This document shows, piece by piece, positions 3,539-47,568 of a stretch of 64,000 bases of DNA. Made by a program: the position numbers and the translations under genes. A model generated the notes under the pieces. The model was not told where the DNA came from. It saw only the letters and a list, made by a program, of their open reading frames with translations, and made no database searches. Within the stretch, counting starts at the first letter, position 1; each line of letters starts with the position of its first letter. The stretch lies in sequence record LC667451.1; one strand, written 5' to 3'.

Positions 3539-4423
3539 TTAATTGAAGTGCAGATAGAACGAGCCCTGGAACCAGGAACCCGCTACCGCGGTGATCAAGA
3601 CTACGTTCGCAAACTTGTTGCTGTTCGCCCCCAATGCACTGGCTGAGGGGAGTGTCAGCCGGGTCACCAACAGATTCGCCAATCCACCGGCCGTCGCCGA
3701 ATCAGCACTGCTCAAATTCAAGCTCGGCAGGTTCTGCTGGAGGAAACCCAGAATCGTCGCTAACGCACTACCTGTGGCTGACCACTGGGCAGGCGTGTAG
3801 GTGCCAGACGAAGCAATGGCCAGCAAGGACGTGCGGATCTTCGAACAGTCCAGGCCGTACGAGAGCACGTCAGCCTGTGGCTTACGACCACCCCCGAACG
3901 TATTACCGCCCGGATAAAGCTTACCCACCAACACCTGGTTGGTGATCTTCTGGTTCATGTACGGCGCACCCTGCGTCCACTTGACCGTGAACGAACCGCT
4001 GTAGCACAGTGACCCCGCCAACATCGAGACGGTGTACGAAGTGCCCGACGTAAAGGTGGTGTTTGCGAAGTCAGTCGGTACCAGTTCAGTGCCGTACTTG
4101 TTGTTGAATGCCGTACAGAACTGCGCGGCAGTCATGGTGGTCGAGCCGATATAGTCATCGAGCGTCAACACCATGCTGCGGAAAAGAGTCGCTAGGTTAA
4201 TGCGACGATACGTCACAGTCTGGTTACCGACGTAGCGGCCGTTACCTTGCACCGTCAAGAGTCGCAGACTTGTGTCCTGGATCGTACCAGTCACAGGCGT
4301 AATCGCAGTTGGAACAAGCGTCTGCAGGTTTTGCATCGACAACGGCGCAACCTGCAGTCCCGGATTCGACTGATTGATCAACCCGAGCAAGGTGTTCAAC
4401 TGCGTGTCAAGAAATGGGTACAT
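3539..4423 (-). CDS. Tail-fibre family virion protein
   Basis: 294 aa. LINQSNP...YRRINL...SLCYSGSF...FYLHFN. SD gaggtg. Confidence 0.8.
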   Translation of the reverse strand: MYPFLDTQLNTLLGLINQSNPGLQVAPLSMQNLQTLVPTAITPVTGTIQDTSLRLLTVQGNGRYVGNQTVTYRRINLATLFRSMVLTLDDYIGSTTMTAAQFCTAFNNKYGTELVPTDFANTTFTSGTSYTVSMLAGSLCYSGSFTVKWTQGAPYMNQKITNQVLVGKLYPGGNTFGGGRKPQADVLSYGLDCSKIRTSLLAIASSGTYTPAQWSATGSALATILGFLQQNLPSLNLSSADSATAGGLANLLVTRLTLPSASALGANSNKFANVVLITAVAGSWFQGSFYLHFN

Positions 4424-5375: not shown

Positions 5376-6368
5376 TTAGACGTTGTAGTGGAAGATCATG
5401 CGACCAACGGCCCAACTATTGGCGCCCAATATATCCAGCACAAAACAGTTGTTGAAGTACTTGCTGTTCGCCTCCGGCACCGCTGCGTTGGGCAGCGTGT
5501 ACTGCTTGAAGACCATGCCGAACAAACTGCCGACCGCATTCGCAGGCGAGGTCGTAATGTACGCTATGCCGCTGTTCGCTGCCAGCTGCGCAATCACGGC
5601 ATTCTTCACAGTCGAGTACGGCGTCAGCGTGGTGCCGATCGGCGCGCCTGAGTTCGTCATCGCATTCAGGAACGACGCATATGTGAGGCTATTCGCCGCC
5701 ATCAGCTGGTTGAAGACCGCGGTCCAGTCGTAGGAGTACGAATCCAGATCAACGATGTGCGGAGTCGACCCATCGCCCGGCACTGATGAGATTGCGCCAG
5801 GGAACACGCGAGCATTCTCCAGGCTGGTGACCGTCAGCATCGTGCCGATGTCTTGCGGGGCTTGCACCCAGTAGAGGGTGAAGCTGCCAACGTAACCGGG
5901 ACTGGTAGTCTGTGCGGCGACTGTGATCGAGCTATTGCGGGTGCCTGCAGGCAGACCGATTGCCGGAACAGCGTTGGTGTTACCTGCGCCCAACGAACCG
6001 TCGGCCACATCCGCCAGAGTCAGATTCAGGCCGTACTTGGCGTTGATCGCCGGAAGCAGGTCAGAGATCTTGTACGGCGAAACGCCCGTGGCAGCAGGCG
6101 AGTACTTGTAGATCACAATCGGCAAACTGCGAAACAGCGTGGCGAAGTTGATCCGACGATAGTTGAGCGTGGTGTTGCCGATATACTTCGTACCGGCGGC
6201 GGCCGTCACCTTGATAGCGGTGTCCTGGATGTTGCCTCCCGTGGGAGTCACCGAAGAGGGCGCGCCGTACAGTACGTTCGTCGTCGTCACCGGCACCGGC
6301 AGATCCGGGTTGGCCTGATTGATCAGGTCCACCAGCATCTGCAAGGATTGCTTTGGATAGAGAGACAT
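5376..6368 (-). CDS. Tail-fibre family virion protein
   Basis: 330 aa. LINQANP...YRRINF...MIFHYNV. Confidence 0.8.
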   Translation of the reverse strand: MSLYPKQSLQMLVDLINQANPDLPVPVTTTNVLYGAPSSVTPTGGNIQDTAIKVTAAAGTKYIGNTTLNYRRINFATLFRSLPIVIYKYSPAATGVSPYKISDLLPAINAKYGLNLTLADVADGSLGAGNTNAVPAIGLPAGTRNSSITVAAQTTSPGYVGSFTLYWVQAPQDIGTMLTVTSLENARVFPGAISSVPGDGSTPHIVDLDSYSYDWTAVFNQLMAANSLTYASFLNAMTNSGAPIGTTLTPYSTVKNAVIAQLAANSGIAYITTSPANAVGSLFGMVFKQYTLPNAAVPEANSKYFNNCFVLDILGANSWAVGRMIFHYNV

Positions 6369-24213: not shown

Positions 24214-25353
24214 ATGGCTGATCCATACAACATTACAGTCGACGACATCCTGATGGCGTCCAATGATGGAACCTCCGTCTCCGATAAGGTCGACCAGATT
24301 CTCCAGATGGGACCAGCAGGCTCGTTCGACACAGCCATTGGTAATACCGCGTTTGGTTTAAACCATCGGCAACAACCTCCGGCAATTCTCAGCAATCGTG
24401 ATCATTACGGCTACACGTTCTTTACGCGTCCCCGGATGAACATGACTGACGACAACCTCCGGACTCAGCGTCGCTTCGGCCCGTTGCTCTCGCAACTCGA
24501 TTACAGCTGGCAACGCTTTACGCGCTGCACGCTCGATCCGGACCTCGCCTGGGCGGATTCTCCGGTGAGCTGCTCGCTCGTCGATCGTCAACAAGCCTTC
24601 ATACCTATCCTTTCGAACAACCTCCTGTCAATGACGGGCTGGCCTGATCTCGAAGCCATGACGTTCACTGCGCATGAAGGCATATACAAAGAATCCTTCA
24701 GCATCGTGGATAGCGTGGTCGATAGGTACGAGACATACGATATAACCGCCAATTTCCGGAACCTGCCGGGTGATCCGATCACCTTGATGTTCCTGACGTG
24801 GCTGTATTACGAGTCGTATGTGTACCTGGGTGAGATCGTCCCTTACCCGGATATGCTCATCAATAACGAGATCGATTACCAGACGCGCATTTACCGTTTG
24901 GTGATGGATGCGGATAAACGTCGTGTGCAGGGCATTGCGGCATGTGGTGCGGCTTTCCCGACGACCTGTCCGATCGGGGCGAAGTTTAACTTCGAGCACG
25001 ACCAGCCGTTGAACAAGAACATGGATCAGATCAGCATCACGTTCCGCTGTGCGGGTGCCATGTACAACGACGACATCCTGATCGATGAGTTCAATCGGAC
25101 CCAGGCCCTCTTTAACAGCAACATGAACCCGAATAACTTCAGTGGTTCGGGACAGAGCACGACGAACTCAACGGGCTATCGCTTGCTGGCATTGAACGAG
25201 CTGGAGCTCTTTAACAATACGGGCTATCCGCGGATTGATCCTGTGACGTACGAGTTGCAGTGGTGGGTCGATAGCTCGACTTATCAGCGCATGCTGCCCT
25301 TCCTCTCGTACCAACAAGGACTCATCACGCGACTCGCTTCGCCGACAAGCTAA
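24214..25353 (+). CDS. Virion structural protein, gp88-like
   Basis: 379 aa. YTFFTRP motif, synteny. Confidence 0.6.
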   Translation: MADPYNITVDDILMASNDGTSVSDKVDQILQMGPAGSFDTAIGNTAFGLNHRQQPPAILSNRDHYGYTFFTRPRMNMTDDNLRTQRRFGPLLSQLDYSWQRFTRCTLDPDLAWADSPVSCSLVDRQQAFIPILSNNLLSMTGWPDLEAMTFTAHEGIYKESFSIVDSVVDRYETYDITANFRNLPGDPITLMFLTWLYYESYVYLGEIVPYPDMLINNEIDYQTRIYRLVMDADKRRVQGIAACGAAFPTTCPIGAKFNFEHDQPLNKNMDQISITFRCAGAMYNDDILIDEFNRTQALFNSNMNPNNFSGSGQSTTNSTGYRLLALNELELFNNTGYPRIDPVTYELQWWVDSSTYQRMLPFLSYQQGLITRLASPTS

Positions 25354-25365
25354 AGGAAAAGGAAG

Positions 25366-28284
25366 ATGGCTGCTACGATTAGCGAACTGTTGTCGAACAT
25401 GACGCAGTATCAGTACAACCCTGCATTGATTCAGCAGGACGTCCTGGACCACCTCGAAGTGGTGACCAGTGGCGGGGTGAATGTCGTCGATCCGTCGAAC
25501 CCATTTGTGTTCGGTCTGGAAGCGGCGACGGTGATGACGGCTGGCTTCATGGCCAAGAACGAAACCAACACCCGCAAGCAGTATCCGCAGATGGCACAGA
25601 CCCCGGAAGATCTGTATCTGCACATGTCAGACTGGGACTACATCAACCGCTTTGCGAAACCCTCATCGGCGAACTTCTCGTTTGCTTTCGATAAGGACGA
25701 ACTGATCTCGAAGCTGGTAACGGACCCCACGACCGGCGTGTCGCAGATCGTGATTCCGCGCAACACGGTCGTAGCCTGTGCGGGTGTGTACTTCAGTCTC
25801 CAGTATCCGATCGTGATTCGCCAGATGCAACACGGCGGTTTGAACATCACGTACGATGCGAGCGAAACCTCACCCTTGCAAACGCTCACCACCAACCAGA
25901 TCGACTGGGAAACGCGTGGGACGGGAGCAAACAACTGGGTGTTCTTCACGGTACCGCTCTATCAGTTCGACATCATCAGCACCAAGCAGGCGGTGTCGCT
26001 GGCGACCAAGTGGCAAACGCAGGTCAACATCACGGACCAGTATTACTACACCCGTGTATGGTCACAGAACGCCGACGGTACGTGGACGGAAATCGCGACG
26101 ACGCATTCGATCGAAGTGTATGATCCGACCGTGCCGACAGCTGTGTTGCAGGTGATCAACAAGACGCTGACCATCACCATCCCGCAGATCTACATGAACT
26201 CGGGACAGATCGGCAGTTCGATCCGGGTGGATGTGTACGAGACCAAGGGTAGTCTCAGCATGAACTTGTCGTCCTACGCACCGAATCAGTTCTCGGCGCA
26301 GTGGCTGTATCTGGACAACAATGACGTGCTGCCGACCAACTTCTCGGCGCCGCTGAAGAACTTCAACCAGCTGGCGATCTGGTCGGATGACCAAACGCTC
26401 GACGGTGCCGATGCACTGGACTTTGCGACCTTGCGTTCGCGCGTGATGACGAACTCCACGGGCGCCCAGAACCTGCCGATCACCAACGTGCAGATTCAGG
26501 CAGCCCTCACCGAGATCGGTTACGACTTTGTCGAGAACATCGACAACATCACGAACCGGATGTTCCTGGCCACCCGTGCGATGCCGGACCCGACGAACCC
26601 GTCGTTGATTACGGCTGCGGCGGCCTCTATCGAAACCATCGCGACGACGCTTGCTGAAGCAGCGACGCTCGGGACAGTGATCGATAACGGTAGCTCACTC
26701 ACCATCACGCCGGATACGCTCTACCAGATCCAGTCGGGAATCGTGTCCTTCGTGCCGGACGCGGCGAAGGCTGCACTGATGGCGTTGCCGCCGGATCAAC
26801 GCGCGTTGGCTGTGACGAACGGTCAGTACTTCTATTCGCCCTTCCACTACGTGCTCGACAACTCGTCGGCTGAGTTTGCGATGCGTCCGTACTACCTGGA
26901 TGCCCCGCAGTGTATCACCACGCTCTTTGTGTCGGAGAATGACACGACGTTGCTGCAGGTGACCACGGCACCGAGCTACTCGATCACGAAGACAGCGAGC
27001 GGCTACAAGCTGACGATTACCTCGGCGTCTAACGATGCCTGGAAGGCGTTGGCGGATAACGACGTGTTTGTGCAGCTGGCGTACATTCCGGAAGGGGAGA
27101 GCAGCTACGCTTACCTGATGGGTACGCTCGATGGCAAGAACTCGCAAGGCGAACGTCAGTACTCGTTTGACCTGTCGTCGACTTTCAATGTCGATTCGAA
27201 CGACATGCTGGAACTCGAGAAGTTCCTCATGTTCACCGCGCAACCGCTGTCCACCTCCTGCAAGCTGACGCAGACCTTTGAGATTCTCTGGTCGGTCGAA
27301 GCCGTGATGGACGTACAGTGGAAACCGGGCGAAGTAGACAACGTGCTGGGTCGTTTCCTGTTGCCTGCCGACGTGGTCGGTGTGACGCATGAACAGATCC
27401 GTATCGAGTTCGGTCAGGCTCTCTCGGCGCTGTGGGCCAACAGCCGTACGGTCGTGGACCAGATCCAGTACAAGACCTGGTCCACCGATGTGCTCTCGTA
27501 CTGGCAGGAAGACGTCTACGTGACCAACGCCCAGGGCCAGGCGATCTGGATCGAGAATGGCCAGCTGGTCGGACCGACGATCCTGCATCACGCGGGTGAT
27601 CCGGTGATTGATCCAGGCACGGGTCAGCAAGTCTATCTGCATCGCGCAGGTGACGTGATGTACGACGTCGACGGTAATCAGATCCCGGTGGGTACGCAAG
27701 ATGTGTTGCGGGCACTGGACCTGATGCTGCTGGAAGGTGTGTATGCTTTCGCCACGGATACGATTGCCACCGGCTATCGGACCGAATTGGTGGATACGGT
27801 ACTCGCCTGGTTGACGGAAGACCTGGTGGCGTTCCAGGCCAAGCTGCTGGAGCAGACCAACATCTACTTCTATCCGAAGGCCACCACGGGCAACATCGAC
27901 GTGATGATCAACGGCGGCTTGAAGACCACCATCGCAGCAGGCCAAAGCTTTAACGTTACGCTGTATGTTCCGGCATCCGTGTACGGGAACTCGGATCTTC
28001 AGAACCAGATCGTTAAGACCACCATCTCGACGATCGCCACCACGTTGGACAACGATACCGTAGCGGACTCGGCACTGAAGGTCGCGCTGATGAAGGTCTA
28101 CGGCGATGACGTCATCGACTGCGAAATCACGGGGCTGGGTGGTTCACCTAACATCTCAGTGCTGACCGTGCTCGACGCATCGAACAAGCTGTCGATCCGC
28201 AAGCGTCTGTACGCGCAACCGGATAACAGTCTGATTGTTCAGGAAGACGTTACCGTCACGTTCGTGCAACACCAGTTGTCGTAA
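25366..28284 (+). CDS. Virion structural protein, gp87-like (putative baseplate wedge)
   Basis: 972 aa. GAD...LRSRV...ITN region is reminiscent of T4 gp6-type wedge proteins. Synteny. Confidence 0.65.
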   Translation: MAATISELLSNMTQYQYNPALIQQDVLDHLEVVTSGGVNVVDPSNPFVFGLEAATVMTAGFMAKNETNTRKQYPQMAQTPEDLYLHMSDWDYINRFAKPSSANFSFAFDKDELISKLVTDPTTGVSQIVIPRNTVVACAGVYFSLQYPIVIRQMQHGGLNITYDASETSPLQTLTTNQIDWETRGTGANNWVFFTVPLYQFDIISTKQAVSLATKWQTQVNITDQYYYTRVWSQNADGTWTEIATTHSIEVYDPTVPTAVLQVINKTLTITIPQIYMNSGQIGSSIRVDVYETKGSLSMNLSSYAPNQFSAQWLYLDNNDVLPTNFSAPLKNFNQLAIWSDDQTLDGADALDFATLRSRVMTNSTGAQNLPITNVQIQAALTEIGYDFVENIDNITNRMFLATRAMPDPTNPSLITAAAASIETIATTLAEAATLGTVIDNGSSLTITPDTLYQIQSGIVSFVPDAAKAALMALPPDQRALAVTNGQYFYSPFHYVLDNSSAEFAMRPYYLDAPQCITTLFVSENDTTLLQVTTAPSYSITKTASGYKLTITSASNDAWKALADNDVFVQLAYIPEGESSYAYLMGTLDGKNSQGERQYSFDLSSTFNVDSNDMLELEKFLMFTAQPLSTSCKLTQTFEILWSVEAVMDVQWKPGEVDNVLGRFLLPADVVGVTHEQIRIEFGQALSALWANSRTVVDQIQYKTWSTDVLSYWQEDVYVTNAQGQAIWIENGQLVGPTILHHAGDPVIDPGTGQQVYLHRAGDVMYDVDGNQIPVGTQDVLRALDLMLLEGVYAFATDTIATGYRTELVDTVLAWLTEDLVAFQAKLLEQTNIYFYPKATTGNIDVMINGGLKTTIAAGQSFNVTLYVPASVYGNSDLQNQIVKTTISTIATTLDNDTVADSALKVALMKVYGDDVIDCEITGLGGSPNISVLTVLDASNKLSIRKRLYAQPDNSLIVQEDVTVTFVQHQLS

Positions 28285-28303
28285 CACCAAAAAATAAAAG
28301 AGT

Positions 28304-28333
28304 CATAAAGGGGAGGCTTCGGCCTCCCCTATG
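28304..28333. terminator. CATA-hairpin-TATG element
   Basis: cata-aa-ggggaggc-ttcg-gcctcccc-tatg, with an A-run on the left. Confidence 0.75.
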
Positions 28334-28357
28334 TTTAATCTGCTACAGGAGCTCGCT

Positions 28358-28999
28358 ATGAGCAACATCAAGTGTTTTCTCATCGAACCTGCAATGCAGG
28401 CTGAGATGAAATTGCGTCGCTATACCTACGTGGGTCATGCTGAGACGAAATGTCCGAATAGCCGCCTGGGTTCGCACTCGGCAGCGACACCGTACGGTCA
28501 TGCTCCGCTTGCCATCGGGACTTCTCCCCATGGGTCGCGCTACTGGGATCTGGCCGTTCATGAACCCGCCCACGATGACACTCGTTGGCCAACGCACTGC
28601 GGCTGCGGCTACGCTTTCCTGCCAACCGACGAATGGCAACTGTTCTACCGCGCACTCTACAAGCGCGTGGATGGCGAGCCGGGTCTGTGGTCCACCGATG
28701 ACGCACCGGTCGGCGCGATGTGGTACGATCTACAGGACGAGCGTGAAGACCGTGCCTTTGTCGGACCGGACGGCAAACGCCTCTTTGTCAAGACACCAGG
28801 TGGTGACTGGTGCATCGACTGGCGTGCCCGCAACTGTACGCTGCCGCTCGATAACGAGCATCGCTGCTGGGTGCGACACGGTGTACCGCCGCTTGTCACG
28901 GTGGACAAGAACGGTTTGACCTGTGCGGCGGGTGCAGGCTCAATCGTCTGTGGTGACTACCACGGTTTCCTACGCAACGGCTACTTGGAGGGCTGTTAA
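28358..28999 (+). CDS. Cys/His-rich hypothetical protein with a DUF6527-like C-terminus
   Basis: ATG 28358 follows aggag (the track's ATG 28331 lies in the TATG element). C-terminus CWVRHGVPPLVTV...GSI...YHGFLRNG parallels DUF6527 W...VTLSPSI...HY. Confidence 0.6.
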   Translation: MSNIKCFLIEPAMQAEMKLRRYTYVGHAETKCPNSRLGSHSAATPYGHAPLAIGTSPHGSRYWDLAVHEPAHDDTRWPTHCGCGYAFLPTDEWQLFYRALYKRVDGEPGLWSTDDAPVGAMWYDLQDEREDRAFVGPDGKRLFVKTPGGDWCIDWRARNCTLPLDNEHRCWVRHGVPPLVTVDKNGLTCAAGAGSIVCGDYHGFLRNGYLEGC

Positions 29000-29313
29000 T
29001 GAGTGAAATGCAACTCGGGGATCTTACCCCGATGCGTGATCAGGAACTGACGGTCGAGTTTGTGAAGTACGTGCCGCAGCAATTGGTGCAGGGTGTACTC
29101 TATGTGTCGGAGGAATTCGGCACAGCGATTCATCTGTGTGCCTGCGGCTGGTGCAAGCAGAAGACCGTCACGCCGTTCCACATCGGCGATAGGGGGTGGA
29201 AGTACACACGCAGTCCCGAAGACCGTGTAACCCTGTCTCCGTCGATTGGCAACTACCAAATGCCTTGTAAGTCACACTACTGGGTGAAGGACAACAAGAT
29301 CATTTGGATCTAA
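28999..29313 (+). CDS. DUF6527 family protein (putative Zn-binding Ubl peptidase)
   Basis: 104 aa with a canonical DUF6527 pattern: GVLYVSEEFGTAIHLCACG.C...VTP...W...VTLSPSIGNYQMPCKSHYW. TAATG coupling to the upstream gene. Confidence 0.85.
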   Translation: MSEMQLGDLTPMRDQELTVEFVKYVPQQLVQGVLYVSEEFGTAIHLCACGWCKQKTVTPFHIGDRGWKYTRSPEDRVTLSPSIGNYQMPCKSHYWVKDNKIIWI

Positions 29314-29317
29314 GCGT

Positions 29318-29348
29318 CATAGAGCCGGGGTCACCCCCGGCTCTTATG
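29318..29348. terminator. CATA-hairpin-TATG element at a convergent junction
   Basis: catagagccgggg-tcac-ccccggctcttatg. Confidence 0.75.
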
Positions 29349-29354
29349 CCCTTC

Positions 29355-30869
29355 TTACTTGAAGAGGTCCTTGGCTTTCGCTGCCAGGTGACGATTGCGC
29401 ATCTTCTCGGCTTGCTTGGCGAGTTCCTGAATGACTTCCGGTGCATGGGACTCACGCGCCGAGCCTTGCAGGTCCCGATAGATCGCAACAGCCAGACGAT
29501 AGGCAAAGCCCGTCACCCGTGCTGCCATCGTTTCCACAATCGAGCGATAGGCATTCATGCGGTTGGCAATCAGCGAGAGATCCCGCACGTCTTGCCGCAC
29601 GGCATCGAGCGCTTCACGCATCGGCTGCGCCATGGAGTGATCCGGCATGCCTGGCGCGCCATCGGTAATGACGTTGCCAATCTTCGTCTCGATGATGTCG
29701 AGATACTTCTCGATCGTCAACAGACGAATGCCGATATTACGCCCCGACTCAATCAGCTTCTTGGTCGGGCCCTGAGCCAATGCATCCGCCATGCGGGTGA
29801 ACACTTGCTCAAAGGAGAGGTGAACTTGTGGATCACCTTGCGAGGCTTCCATGTAGACGTGGTTGTAGTTATCCGCCACGTCTTGCAGCGTTTGCTGGCG
29901 ACCTTGCCAGTTCAGTTCGATCCGTTGCAGCAGGATCTCGAGCGAGCGACCCTGCACGAGCTGATCACCCAGTTGGGTCGAACCCTGACTGGCGACGATA
30001 CCGTTGAGCACGTTGGTCTTTTGCATCATGACCGAAAGTGCTTGCTGGACGAGGCCAACCAGGTCTTCAGTCATCATGGTCCAGGGACCTTGTTCGATGA
30101 TGTCGTGGAAGATCGGATTACGGCCTTCCATAAACTGCCGCACTTCATCGGTGGCTTCGGTGTCGTACAGGTAGTGGGCTACCAGCTTATCGAAGTCACT
30201 GACGTGCTGCGTTTCGCCGTGCTGGTCCTTCAGGTCAACGCCCTTGGTCACTTCGGCCTGGACCAGCTTAGCCAGGGTACCGAGATCTCGCAGGTCCTGT
30301 TGAATCTCTTCGGAGCGATACTCCTGCTGTTGCGCGACTTGCTCGACTTCCTTGACGATTTGGTCGTTGGACTTATTCATCAAGTGCTCGTTGGCATCAC
30401 GGGAGCCCACAATCCACAGCGCAAAGCGACGCAACAATTCGCGCAGCTTCTTGATGAGGTGTTGGAAGACTTCCTTGATCTTGCCGAGCACAGACTCCAT
30501 CGCAGGCTTGTAGCGCGTGGCTGTAGGCTGCTTGGTGTACCAGTTAAGTGAGCGGCCGCCATCGAACTCAGCATCCAGGCGCATTGCTTCTTGGGCAATG
30601 GCCTGACTCATCCCGCCGAGTTTCTTCAAGTCGGCGAGCACGTAGCCCAGGTCTTCGATACGGTTCGCTTCTTGCGCGATCACTTGCAGGTCATCTTTCA
30701 GTTCGGGCACTTCACCCGGAATGACTTCCTTAAAGAGATCGTGCGCTTGGACCTCGGGCATCTGGTGGACGTCCGGGTAGCTCTTAACCGGTACAGTCTG
30801 ATCGACTTCGTTCGCGTCAATGTCAGGCTCAACTCCGTGGTTCAAACCCCACTCGTTAAGCCCCGACAT
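29355..30869 (-). CDS. Head/virion protein, gp86-like
   Basis: 504 aa. Propeptide ends in PAMES, followed by the amphipathic family helix KIKEVFQHLIKKLRELL. Confidence 0.6.
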   Translation of the reverse strand: MSGLNEWGLNHGVEPDIDANEVDQTVPVKSYPDVHQMPEVQAHDLFKEVIPGEVPELKDDLQVIAQEANRIEDLGYVLADLKKLGGMSQAIAQEAMRLDAEFDGGRSLNWYTKQPTATRYKPAMESVLGKIKEVFQHLIKKLRELLRRFALWIVGSRDANEHLMNKSNDQIVKEVEQVAQQQEYRSEEIQQDLRDLGTLAKLVQAEVTKGVDLKDQHGETQHVSDFDKLVAHYLYDTEATDEVRQFMEGRNPIFHDIIEQGPWTMMTEDLVGLVQQALSVMMQKTNVLNGIVASQGSTQLGDQLVQGRSLEILLQRIELNWQGRQQTLQDVADNYNHVYMEASQGDPQVHLSFEQVFTRMADALAQGPTKKLIESGRNIGIRLLTIEKYLDIIETKIGNVITDGAPGMPDHSMAQPMREALDAVRQDVRDLSLIANRMNAYRSIVETMAARVTGFAYRLAVAIYRDLQGSARESHAPEVIQELAKQAEKMRNRHLAAKAKDLFK

Positions 30870-31323
30870 CCGCTGCCTCCGTGGTCTTCACCACGCAGAG
30901 CGCTTCACGCACGAGCGCGAAGATCGCGTCCTTGTGATCGTTGCAGAAGCAATGCATTTCTTCGGCCAGGTACAGCGTGGCGCCGACGACCGAGTCGACG
31001 AAGCCGAGCGTGGGCGGTGCGAAGAACTGCGCGCCGGGGTAAGCCGCCGAGTAACGCAGCAGCCAGAAGGTACGCACGACTTCACGGCAGTAGCGCGTGT
31101 CGAATACGACTTCTTCGTTGAAGCGGGCGATCAGGTCGGTGAGCGTCAGGCCGACTTGGGCGGTGAAGTAGTTCTCGGGCGAAACTTCGAGTTGCAGCGA
31201 AGGCAGCGAGAGCTTCGAGGCCAGCGCGATGCCGATACCGGTGGCGAGGATACGGCCACGCAGCGAGGGGTCGGTCACGACACGGTCAGCGACGCGCGAG
31301 AATTCCAGGTACTTGATGTCCAT
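30856..31323 (-). CDS. Conserved phage protein, gp85-like
   Basis: 155 aa, in operon. Confidence 0.55.
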   Translation of the reverse strand: MDIKYLEFSRVADRVVTDPSLRGRILATGIGIALASKLSLPSLQLEVSPENYFTAQVGLTLTDLIARFNEEVVFDTRYCREVVRTFWLLRYSAAYPGAQFFAPPTLGFVDSVVGATLYLAEEMHCFCNDHKDAIFALVREALCVVKTTEAADVGA

Positions 31324-35273: not shown

Positions 35274-35322
35274 AAAAAAAAAAGAGGTCATAACGAGCGA
35301 GCCCTAGGGCTCGCTCTATGAC
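35274..35322. terminator. CATA-hairpin-TATG terminator at a convergent junction
   Basis: A10 run, then gtcata-ac-gagcgagccc-ta-gggctcgctc-tatgac. Confidence 0.8.
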
Positions 35323-47512: not shown

Positions 47513-47568
47513 AAAAAAAAAAAGACGGTCATAAGGCGAGGACCCGAAGGTCCTCGCTCTATGCCGTC
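47513..47568. terminator. CATA-hairpin-TATG terminator at a convergent junction
   Basis: A11 run, then gacggtcata-ag-gcgaggacc-cgaa-ggtcctcgc-tc-tatgccgtc. Confidence 0.8.

Follow-up and report, generated by a model that had tools for sequence, protein, structure and literature searches.

A stand-alone BubE-type gene among the virion genes of Burkholderia phage FLC9, a candidate deconjugase acting against host Bub-type conjugation

BubE, the peptidase of bacterial Bub operons of Types I and II, carries a C4 zinc finger and a Ser-His dyad and cleaves both peptide and isopeptide bonds; co-expressed BubE strips BubA-target conjugates in cells, for which the catalytic Ser and His are required (bioRxiv 10.1101/2024.11.21.623953). 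We analyzed a stretch of 64,000 nucleotides (hereafter the window) from Burkholderia phage FLC9 (LC667451.1, 321,833 bp; host B. glumae); bases 25000-31000 match this record with 100% identity, and window coordinates equal record coordinates minus 248,000. In this window a 104-aa protein of the BubE family, FLC9_gp341 (here gpB), is encoded among virion genes, directly behind a coupled gene for a 213-aa protein, FLC9_gp340 (here gpA). Our proposal, to which we give somewhat less than an even chance, is that gpB is a stand-alone phage BubE, made late in infection, which would remove or consume a Bub-type ubiquitin-like protein (Ubl) of the host.

Eukaryotic viruses encode deubiquitinating and deISGylating proteases; these represent the same concept, the removal of an antiviral tag, in another domain of life, and they have no sequence or fold relation to gpB. 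In bacteria, Cap3 and BilC, the JAB/JAMM enzymes of Type II CBASS and Bil, resemble the proposed gpB in being deconjugases that reverse Ubl-like conjugation and act as negative regulators, but they are metalloproteases with a fold unrelated to that of the Ser-His protein gpB, and they are encoded by the host in their own operon. On the phage side, JAB/MPN deubiquitinase domains of siphophage tail assembly proteins have been speculated to be anti-Bil (bioRxiv 10.1101/2023.09.04.556158), which is the nearest published idea to ours. These domains share with gpB the phage origin, the deconjugase type, the association with virion assembly, and the proposed removal of Ubl from structural proteins; they differ in belonging to another protease family, in their supposed target, Bil, and in being part of a structural protein, whereas gpB is small and free.

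An earlier note, made by a model from the letters of the window, had described DUF6527, the family of gpB, as a Ser-His-dyad, Ubl-processing peptidase of Bub operons and Bil as a system that tags phage tail proteins. Both statements proved accurate: BubE is a Ser-His peptidase that removes BubA conjugates, and Bil tags a phage tail protein. The note also knew of no description of such a counter-defense, and our full-text search of the library found DUF6527 only in the two Bub preprints, in which we saw no mention of copies in phages. What we regard as new is the genomic setting and architecture in which this known enzyme family appears, and the role proposed for it.

gpB and its bacterial and viral relatives

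The assignment of the 104-aa protein to DUF6527, made in the note from intact Ser, His, and cysteine motifs, was borne out by a hidden Markov model (HMM) search. gpB matched PF20137 (DUF6527, called BubE in current Pfam) with an E value of 4.2e-18 and 65.4 bits against a cut-off of 23.6, the alignment spanned profile positions 2-63 of 63, and every invariant position in an alignment with 32 relatives was retained. Among 256 relatives, the zinc cysteines C47, C49, C52, and C90 were conserved in 254, 255, 255, and 228 sequences, S82 in all 256, and H93 in 252; the codons of the zinc cysteines start from 29137, and those of S82 and H93 lie at 29242-29244 and 29275-29277. The same C4 cysteine pattern occurs in Citrobacter BubE, the only BubE whose peptidase activity has been shown (bioRxiv 10.1101/2024.11.21.623953).

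The AlphaFold2 (AF2) model of gpB had a predicted local distance difference test score (pLDDT) of 91.4 and eight strands, the number described for the compact beta-sandwich of BubE, with S82 ending strand 6 and H93 opening strand 7. A fold search of the PDB with this model returned nothing at E ≤ 0.001, and no BubE structure is deposited there; the Bub authors did not succeed in solving the structure and found truncated BubE insoluble (bioRxiv 10.1101/2024.11.21.623953). Sequence searches of the PDB with the DUF6527 and gpA family profiles gave no meaningful match, and PADLOC and NCBIfam matched neither gpA nor gpB. Compared with the copy on a related metagenomic contig (L002, described below), gpB showed a dN (nonsynonymous divergence) of 0.13 with saturated synonymous sites, so it is under purifying selection. 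By profile match and retained residues, gpB is a genuine BubE-family peptidase gene, with peptidase activity predicted.

A hydrophobic N- or C-terminal extension is conserved across operonic BubE, and the Bub authors suggest that it restrains or localizes the enzyme. This extension is not present in gpB, which has 0 residues after the domain and 11 non-hydrophobic residues before it. gpB resembles BubE of the Type I and Type II operons in Pfam family, C4 cysteines, Ser-His residues, and the predicted eight-strand beta fold, but it differs in having no hydrophobic extension and no operonic Ubl, E2, or E1, in belonging to a largely separate viral lineage, and in being encoded among the virion genes of a lytic-type jumbo phage.

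The absence of E1 and Ubl genes, which the note had reported for the window, also held for the whole FLC9 genome. A six-frame search of all eight pieces with HMMs of 57 Bub E2-E1 fusions and 42 BubA proteins found no Bub E2-E1 or BubA (best E values 0.33 for Bub E2-E1, that is BubBD, and 1.5 for BubA), and as these profiles represent Type II Bub, a very different phage ligase or Ubl would escape them. The genome contains one DUF6527 copy and one gpA copy.

Bacterial DUF6527 genes were scanned in one genome per species (80 loci), and their contexts were determined by neighbor clustering and Pfam. Directly upstream of 56-57 of the approximately 61 called genes lies a gene for a DUF6791+ThiF protein of approximately 396 aa (BubBD), and 41 also follow a Multi_ubiq protein (BubA), often with Peptidase_M78 or helix-turn-helix regulators; judged by this gene content, these loci are Type II Bub operons. 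In IMG/VR, 44 loci on contigs of varied size encode DUF6527 relatives, and among the 41 called ones, all of them tail-less orphans, no E1 was found within 6 kb and no neighbor family was repeated outside close relatives. The median C-terminal extension was 46 aa in operonic DUF6527 proteins versus 0 aa in viral ones, and it was also 0 aa in the four bacterial loci without E1. In a neighbor-joining tree, whose resolution is weak with so short a domain, the nearest neighbor of a viral sequence was viral in 36 of 40 cases, and that of a bacterial sequence was bacterial in 53 of 55. Because viral and bacterial DUF6527 largely segregate, FLC9 did not take up the gene recently; its copy belongs to a phage lineage that was already established. 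The note's view that the phage has captured the peptidase is accordingly not supported, since the tail-less orphans form largely their own lineage across at least 44 viral contigs.

Among isolates the gene is rare. Three of 50,697 phage records carry it, those of FLC9, Erwinia phage pEa_SNUABM_29, and Dulem virus 40; within the 290 records that have a homologue of FLC9_gp339, the virion gene upstream of the pair, the number is 2. By this distribution, gpB is a sporadic phage accessory gene homologous to a component of a host pathway.

Such a pathway occurs in the genus of the host. A complete Type II Bub operon (Multi_ubiq of 94 aa, DUF6791+ThiF, BubE) was present in one Burkholderia sp. assembly (L221), a genus-level match to the host of FLC9; gpB was 49% identical to the core of the BubE encoded there, and BubBD homologues have been named from Burkholderia. 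According to our proposal, gpB would be produced late in infection alongside the virion proteins and would cleave host Bub-type Ubl off its targets, or trim or consume the free Ubl. The conjugation response of the host would then be cancelled by a viral deconjugase built from the off-switch of the host pathway itself, and the missing hydrophobic tail would be in keeping with a viral enzyme that acts freely. gpA, a separate accessory gene, may have a role in the same conflict, as suggested by its recurrence near DUF6527-like genes.

A few other DUF6527 loci had peculiarities of their own. Three related viral contigs (L037, L038, L041) carry two DUF6527 genes approximately 2.4 kb apart (at approximately 3550-3837 and 5902-6288). 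A 245-kb contig filed under a Sulfuriferula metagenome-assembled genome (MAG; L003/L132, JARLJL010000015.1) carries a gene for a TubZ-like tubulin along with one for a divergent DNA polymerase and extended stretches of small genes. It has the appearance of a jumbo phage that binning placed in a bacterial MAG, and an upstream DUF7484 gene overlaps its DUF6527 gene. In two Paraburkholderia genomes (L004:1-620 and L131:7141-8282), a Lipase_3 gene and a tail-less DUF6527 gene share 4 nt; the Lipase_3 protein of L131 has 287 aa, and the setting of L004 is prophage-like (NinX, DNA ligase).

Setting among virion genes and history of the locus

FLC9 is a myovirus and a phiKZ-like jumbo phage, placed among the Chimalliviridae-type phages in a review table in which its own lifestyle entry is blank, and all genes of its record are annotated "hypothetical protein". 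In agreement with the note, two coupled genes run in the same direction at 28358-28999 (213 aa) and 28999-29313 (104 aa) with a stop/start overlap TAATG, and the pair is placed between gp87-like and gp86-like virion genes, gp339 upstream and the convergent gp342 downstream. The features of the locus are as follows.

28999..29313, plus strand: gpB (FLC9_gp341), 104 aa, orphan tail-less DUF6527/BubE-type Ser-His peptidase (predicted) with a C4 zinc site; PF20137
28358..28999, plus strand: gpA (FLC9_gp340), 213 aa, accessory gene of an uncharacterized phage family; 2591 homologues, AF2 model
28808..28996, plus strand: C-terminal module of gpA, residues 151-213; conservation, and it stands with another N-terminus in Rhizobium phages
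25366..28284, plus strand: FLC9_gp339, phiKZ gp087-like virion structural protein, 972 aa; phrog_3248, homologues in phiKZ-like phages
29355..30869, minus strand: FLC9_gp342, 504 aa, convergent, at the position of the phiKZ gp086-like virion gene; synteny with L002 and L005-L008, PhiPA3
28304..28333, no strand: palindromic CATA / 9-bp G+C hairpin / TATG, terminator-like; its TATG matches the phiKZ late-promoter core
29318..29348, no strand: palindromic CATA / 10-bp G+C hairpin / TATG, bidirectional terminator-like, between the convergent gpB and gp342

gp339 forms the 3′ end of a rightward late operon, and its full-length homologues in 290 phiKZ-like phage records are labelled virion structural protein. 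PhiPA3 gene 090, one of these homologues, carries a note of similarity to phiKZ gp087; the convergent gene 089 carries the corresponding note for phiKZ gp086, and no gene separates the two. The start of gpA at 28358 is backed by its homologues and by the GenBank record. The ORF lister prolongs gpA to an ATG at 28331, which falls within the TATG of the hairpin element, so that 28331-28357 is an extra ORF stretch.

The note had pointed to a late-type TATG and a Shine-Dalgarno sequence ahead of the first start. Both are there: the G at 28333 lies 25 nt 5′ of the ATG at 28358, and GGAG lies 6 nt 5′ of it. The phiKZ late-promoter core is TATG, its G serving as the start site; this motif is required but does not suffice, and the genome contains it often (PMC4666361). 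The TATG at 28333 is compatible with a late promoter and proves nothing, and a sigma-70 promoter scan of the region gave background level only. Late expression, as expected in the note, would follow from position, as gpB is predicted to be co-expressed with the virion genes.

The CATA-hairpin-TATG elements, which the note described as bracketing the two genes, are present on both flanks, but they do not bracket this pair in any special way, and more copies exist elsewhere. Since CATA and TATG are mutually reverse-complementary, each element is one extended palindrome, and the window has two further perfect intergenic copies, at 35289-35320 and 47530-47563; the former sits between the convergent genes gp347 and gp348. 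The element appears to be the standard bidirectional terminator of this phage and may double as a late-promoter core, and we regard the copies as its general palindromic, terminator-like punctuation. The hairpins were ruled out as ends of a mobile cassette, because the copies are general and terminator-like and because gpA and gpB have different histories.

These histories were read from five related jumbo or metagenomic contigs. The 326.6-kb metagenomic contig L002 has the same gpA-gpB pair with the TAATG overlap, its gp339 is 87% identical to that of FLC9, and the element at 28304-28333 is nearly unchanged in it. Four jumbo contigs of 172-315 kb (L005-L008) show the order gp338-gp339-DUF6527-gp342-gp343-gp344 and no gpA, with protein identities to FLC9 of 66-75% across the syntenic genes (gp339 74-75%, gp342 66%). 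In L005 the gp339 stop and the start of the DUF6527 gene are 2 nt apart, the upstream element is missing, and a single CATA-hairpin-TATG, equivalent to 29318-29348, lies 3′ of DUF6527. The "inserted two-gene cassette" of the note does not fit these contigs, which keep the order of the gp87-like, DUF6527, and gp86-like genes without the 213-aa gene. Because this order is kept without gpA, DUF6527 is the resident gene of the FLC9-like clade. Compared with phiKZ-type phages at large, in which nothing stands between the gp087-like gene and the gp086-like one, it is inserted. gpA, together with its upstream hairpin, is a separate, later insert at an insertion-tolerant junction. In L008 (5245-5934, minus strand), a 229-aa ORF lies exactly between the gp339 homologue and DUF6527, the junction that holds gpA in FLC9, and by eye its sequence reads like a GIY-YIG homing endonuclease.

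Comparison of FLC9 with L002 also showed that gpA has 59% identity and the neighbors 80-87%. Synonymous differences per site (28358-29313 versus L002:9360-10318) were 0.73-0.76 for gpA and gpB versus 0.46-0.51 for the flanking structural genes, which suggests that gpA/gpB is an accessory locus exchanged as alleles by recombination.

In independent lineages, too, DUF6527 has virion genes around it: a head maturation protease lies directly upstream in L017, a tail protein adjoins the gene in L034, and a 936-aa virion structural protein does so in L045; in Erwinia phage pEa_SNUABM_29 (L129:6285-8104), DUF6527 stands between a virion structural protein (phrog_2926, head-and-packaging) and a Peptidase_S80 prohead protease. 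The chief rival of our proposal builds on this setting: gpB would be an accessory peptidase of virion maturation, which trims a head or tail protein of the phage itself as virions are assembled and is unconnected with the Ubl systems of the host. DUF6527 is indeed embedded in virion modules of several independent lineages, after the gp87-like protein in the FLC9-like phages, beside prohead or head-maturation proteases in L017 and the Erwinia phage, and beside a tail protein in L034. However, of the 290 phiKZ-like isolates with these same core virion genes on the flanks, 288 lack the gene, and it is therefore not a core morphogenetic function; other orphans adjoin a DNA methylase, a DNA polymerase, a PLD-like protein, or a lipase, and the Ubl C-terminus is the sole documented substrate class of the family. 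We consider a virion-maturation role unlikely.

The other partners of DUF6527 are DNA methylase, DNA polymerase, PLD-like protein, Lipase_3, and DUF7484. A further reading is a phage-borne exclusion or host-takeover module, in which the peptidase would switch on or govern an upstream effector that varies from case to case (lipase, PLD-like protein, gpA) or would cut a protein of the host. The translationally coupled Lipase_3 of the Paraburkholderia loci (L004, L131) and PLDc_2 of L043 would suit such a module, as these domain types are frequent among defense effectors. But the upstream partners are mutually unrelated and include structural proteins, FLC9 is grouped with the lytic Chimalliviridae jumbo phages (with the blank lifestyle entry mentioned above), and PADLOC gave no match, so we find this module improbable.

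The upstream gene gpA

According to the note, the 213-aa protein ends in a module similar to DUF6527. Profile comparison was negative, and what is left is a likeness at the level of motifs. The kinship of gpA to DUF6527 was unsupported by BLASTP (which found nothing), by Pfam, and by three hhalign set-ups with alignments of 201 and 256 sequences; hhalign gave the whole protein a probability of 5.9-7.5%, its C-terminal part 0.4%, and its N-terminal half 23%, and the C-terminal motif likeness had P = 0.16.

gpA belongs to a family with 2591 homologues in the protein collection, 0 of which has a Pfam domain, and with 216 viral-contig loci. gpA itself had no match in Pfam (E ≤ 1), PHROG, NCBIfam, or PADLOC, and Pfam and PHROG scans of its relatives gave only weak DUF6251 matches in 8 of 33 members. 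Its AF2 model was all-beta (pLDDT 89, predicted template modeling score 0.82) and found no fold match in PDB or BFVD (nothing at E ≤ 0.001). Invariant or near-invariant Cys, His, Asn, Trp, and Gly residues are present, and the conserved positions include C81, C83, N159, C160, H168, C170, C189, S195, and H202. A 146-aa protein of Rhizobium phage RHEph12 (L220:2755-3192), with counterparts in four related Rhizobium phages, has only the C-terminal 63 residues in common with gpA, at 59% identity. Because they are found there on an unrelated N-terminus, residues 151-213 form an independent Cys/His-rich domain.

Across 57 viral loci, gpA had no conserved neighbors, DUF6527-like genes excepted. DUF6527-like genes that retain Ser and His lie near gpA in L062 (same strand, approximately 600 bp), L126 (convergent, adjacent), and L024 (5 kb), and both families are on the same contig, at a distance, in two further jumbo contigs. 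As both are rare, this proximity looks far above chance by a rough estimate, which is not a formal test, and the recurrence hints at either a shared function or a shared accessory-gene niche.

One explanation of it is that gpA and gpB are the phage's own functional pair, in which, for instance, gpB processes or regulates gpA or both act on a joint host target other than a Bub Ubl. The TAATG overlap in FLC9 and L002, the recurrent proximity and shared contigs just described, and the synonymous divergence of both genes, which exceeds that of the flanks, all speak for such a pair. On the other hand, the families are mostly apart (41 of 44 viral DUF6527 loci and 78 of 80 gpA loci), L005-L008 have DUF6527 and no gpA, and gene order and orientation vary among the cases. 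We judge a functional pair of this kind to be quite unlikely.

Weight of the proposal and meaning for Bub

For gpB as a deconjugase acting against host Bub, several points have to be set on the other side. The Bub authors have so far found no Bub operon that protects E. coli from phage, and Bub may not be an antiphage system. The role of gpB is drawn from sequence and gene context, and a virion-maturation role would agree just as well with its place inside morphogenesis modules. The evidence of a Bub operon comes from Burkholderia sp., the host being B. glumae, and the limited reach of the Type II profiles in the E1 and Ubl search counts here too.

A broader form of the proposal would make tail-less orphan BubE a widespread and so far unrecognized class of phage deconjugases directed against Bub-type conjugation. 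The gpA family would add another component to this counter-defense, one with a new mechanism, perhaps a Cys/His-rich enzyme that has an invariant Ser and His of its own. The existence of these genes would then be the first evidence, from the side of the virus, that Bub operons act against phages and do so at virion assembly. We think it doubtful that matters go this far.

What the discoverers of Bub describe is its conjugation chemistry, with no protection against phage. A distinct, conserved phage clade of the Bub off-switch, under purifying selection and placed among late virion genes, would be an arms-race signature pointing to an antiviral role of Bub, and the clade points to phage lineages and infection stages in which an effect of Bub could be sought. 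The phage enzymes, which are naturally tail-less, may also aid structural work on BubE, and the gpA family offers more than 2,500 phage proteins with a confidently predicted fold that has no match.

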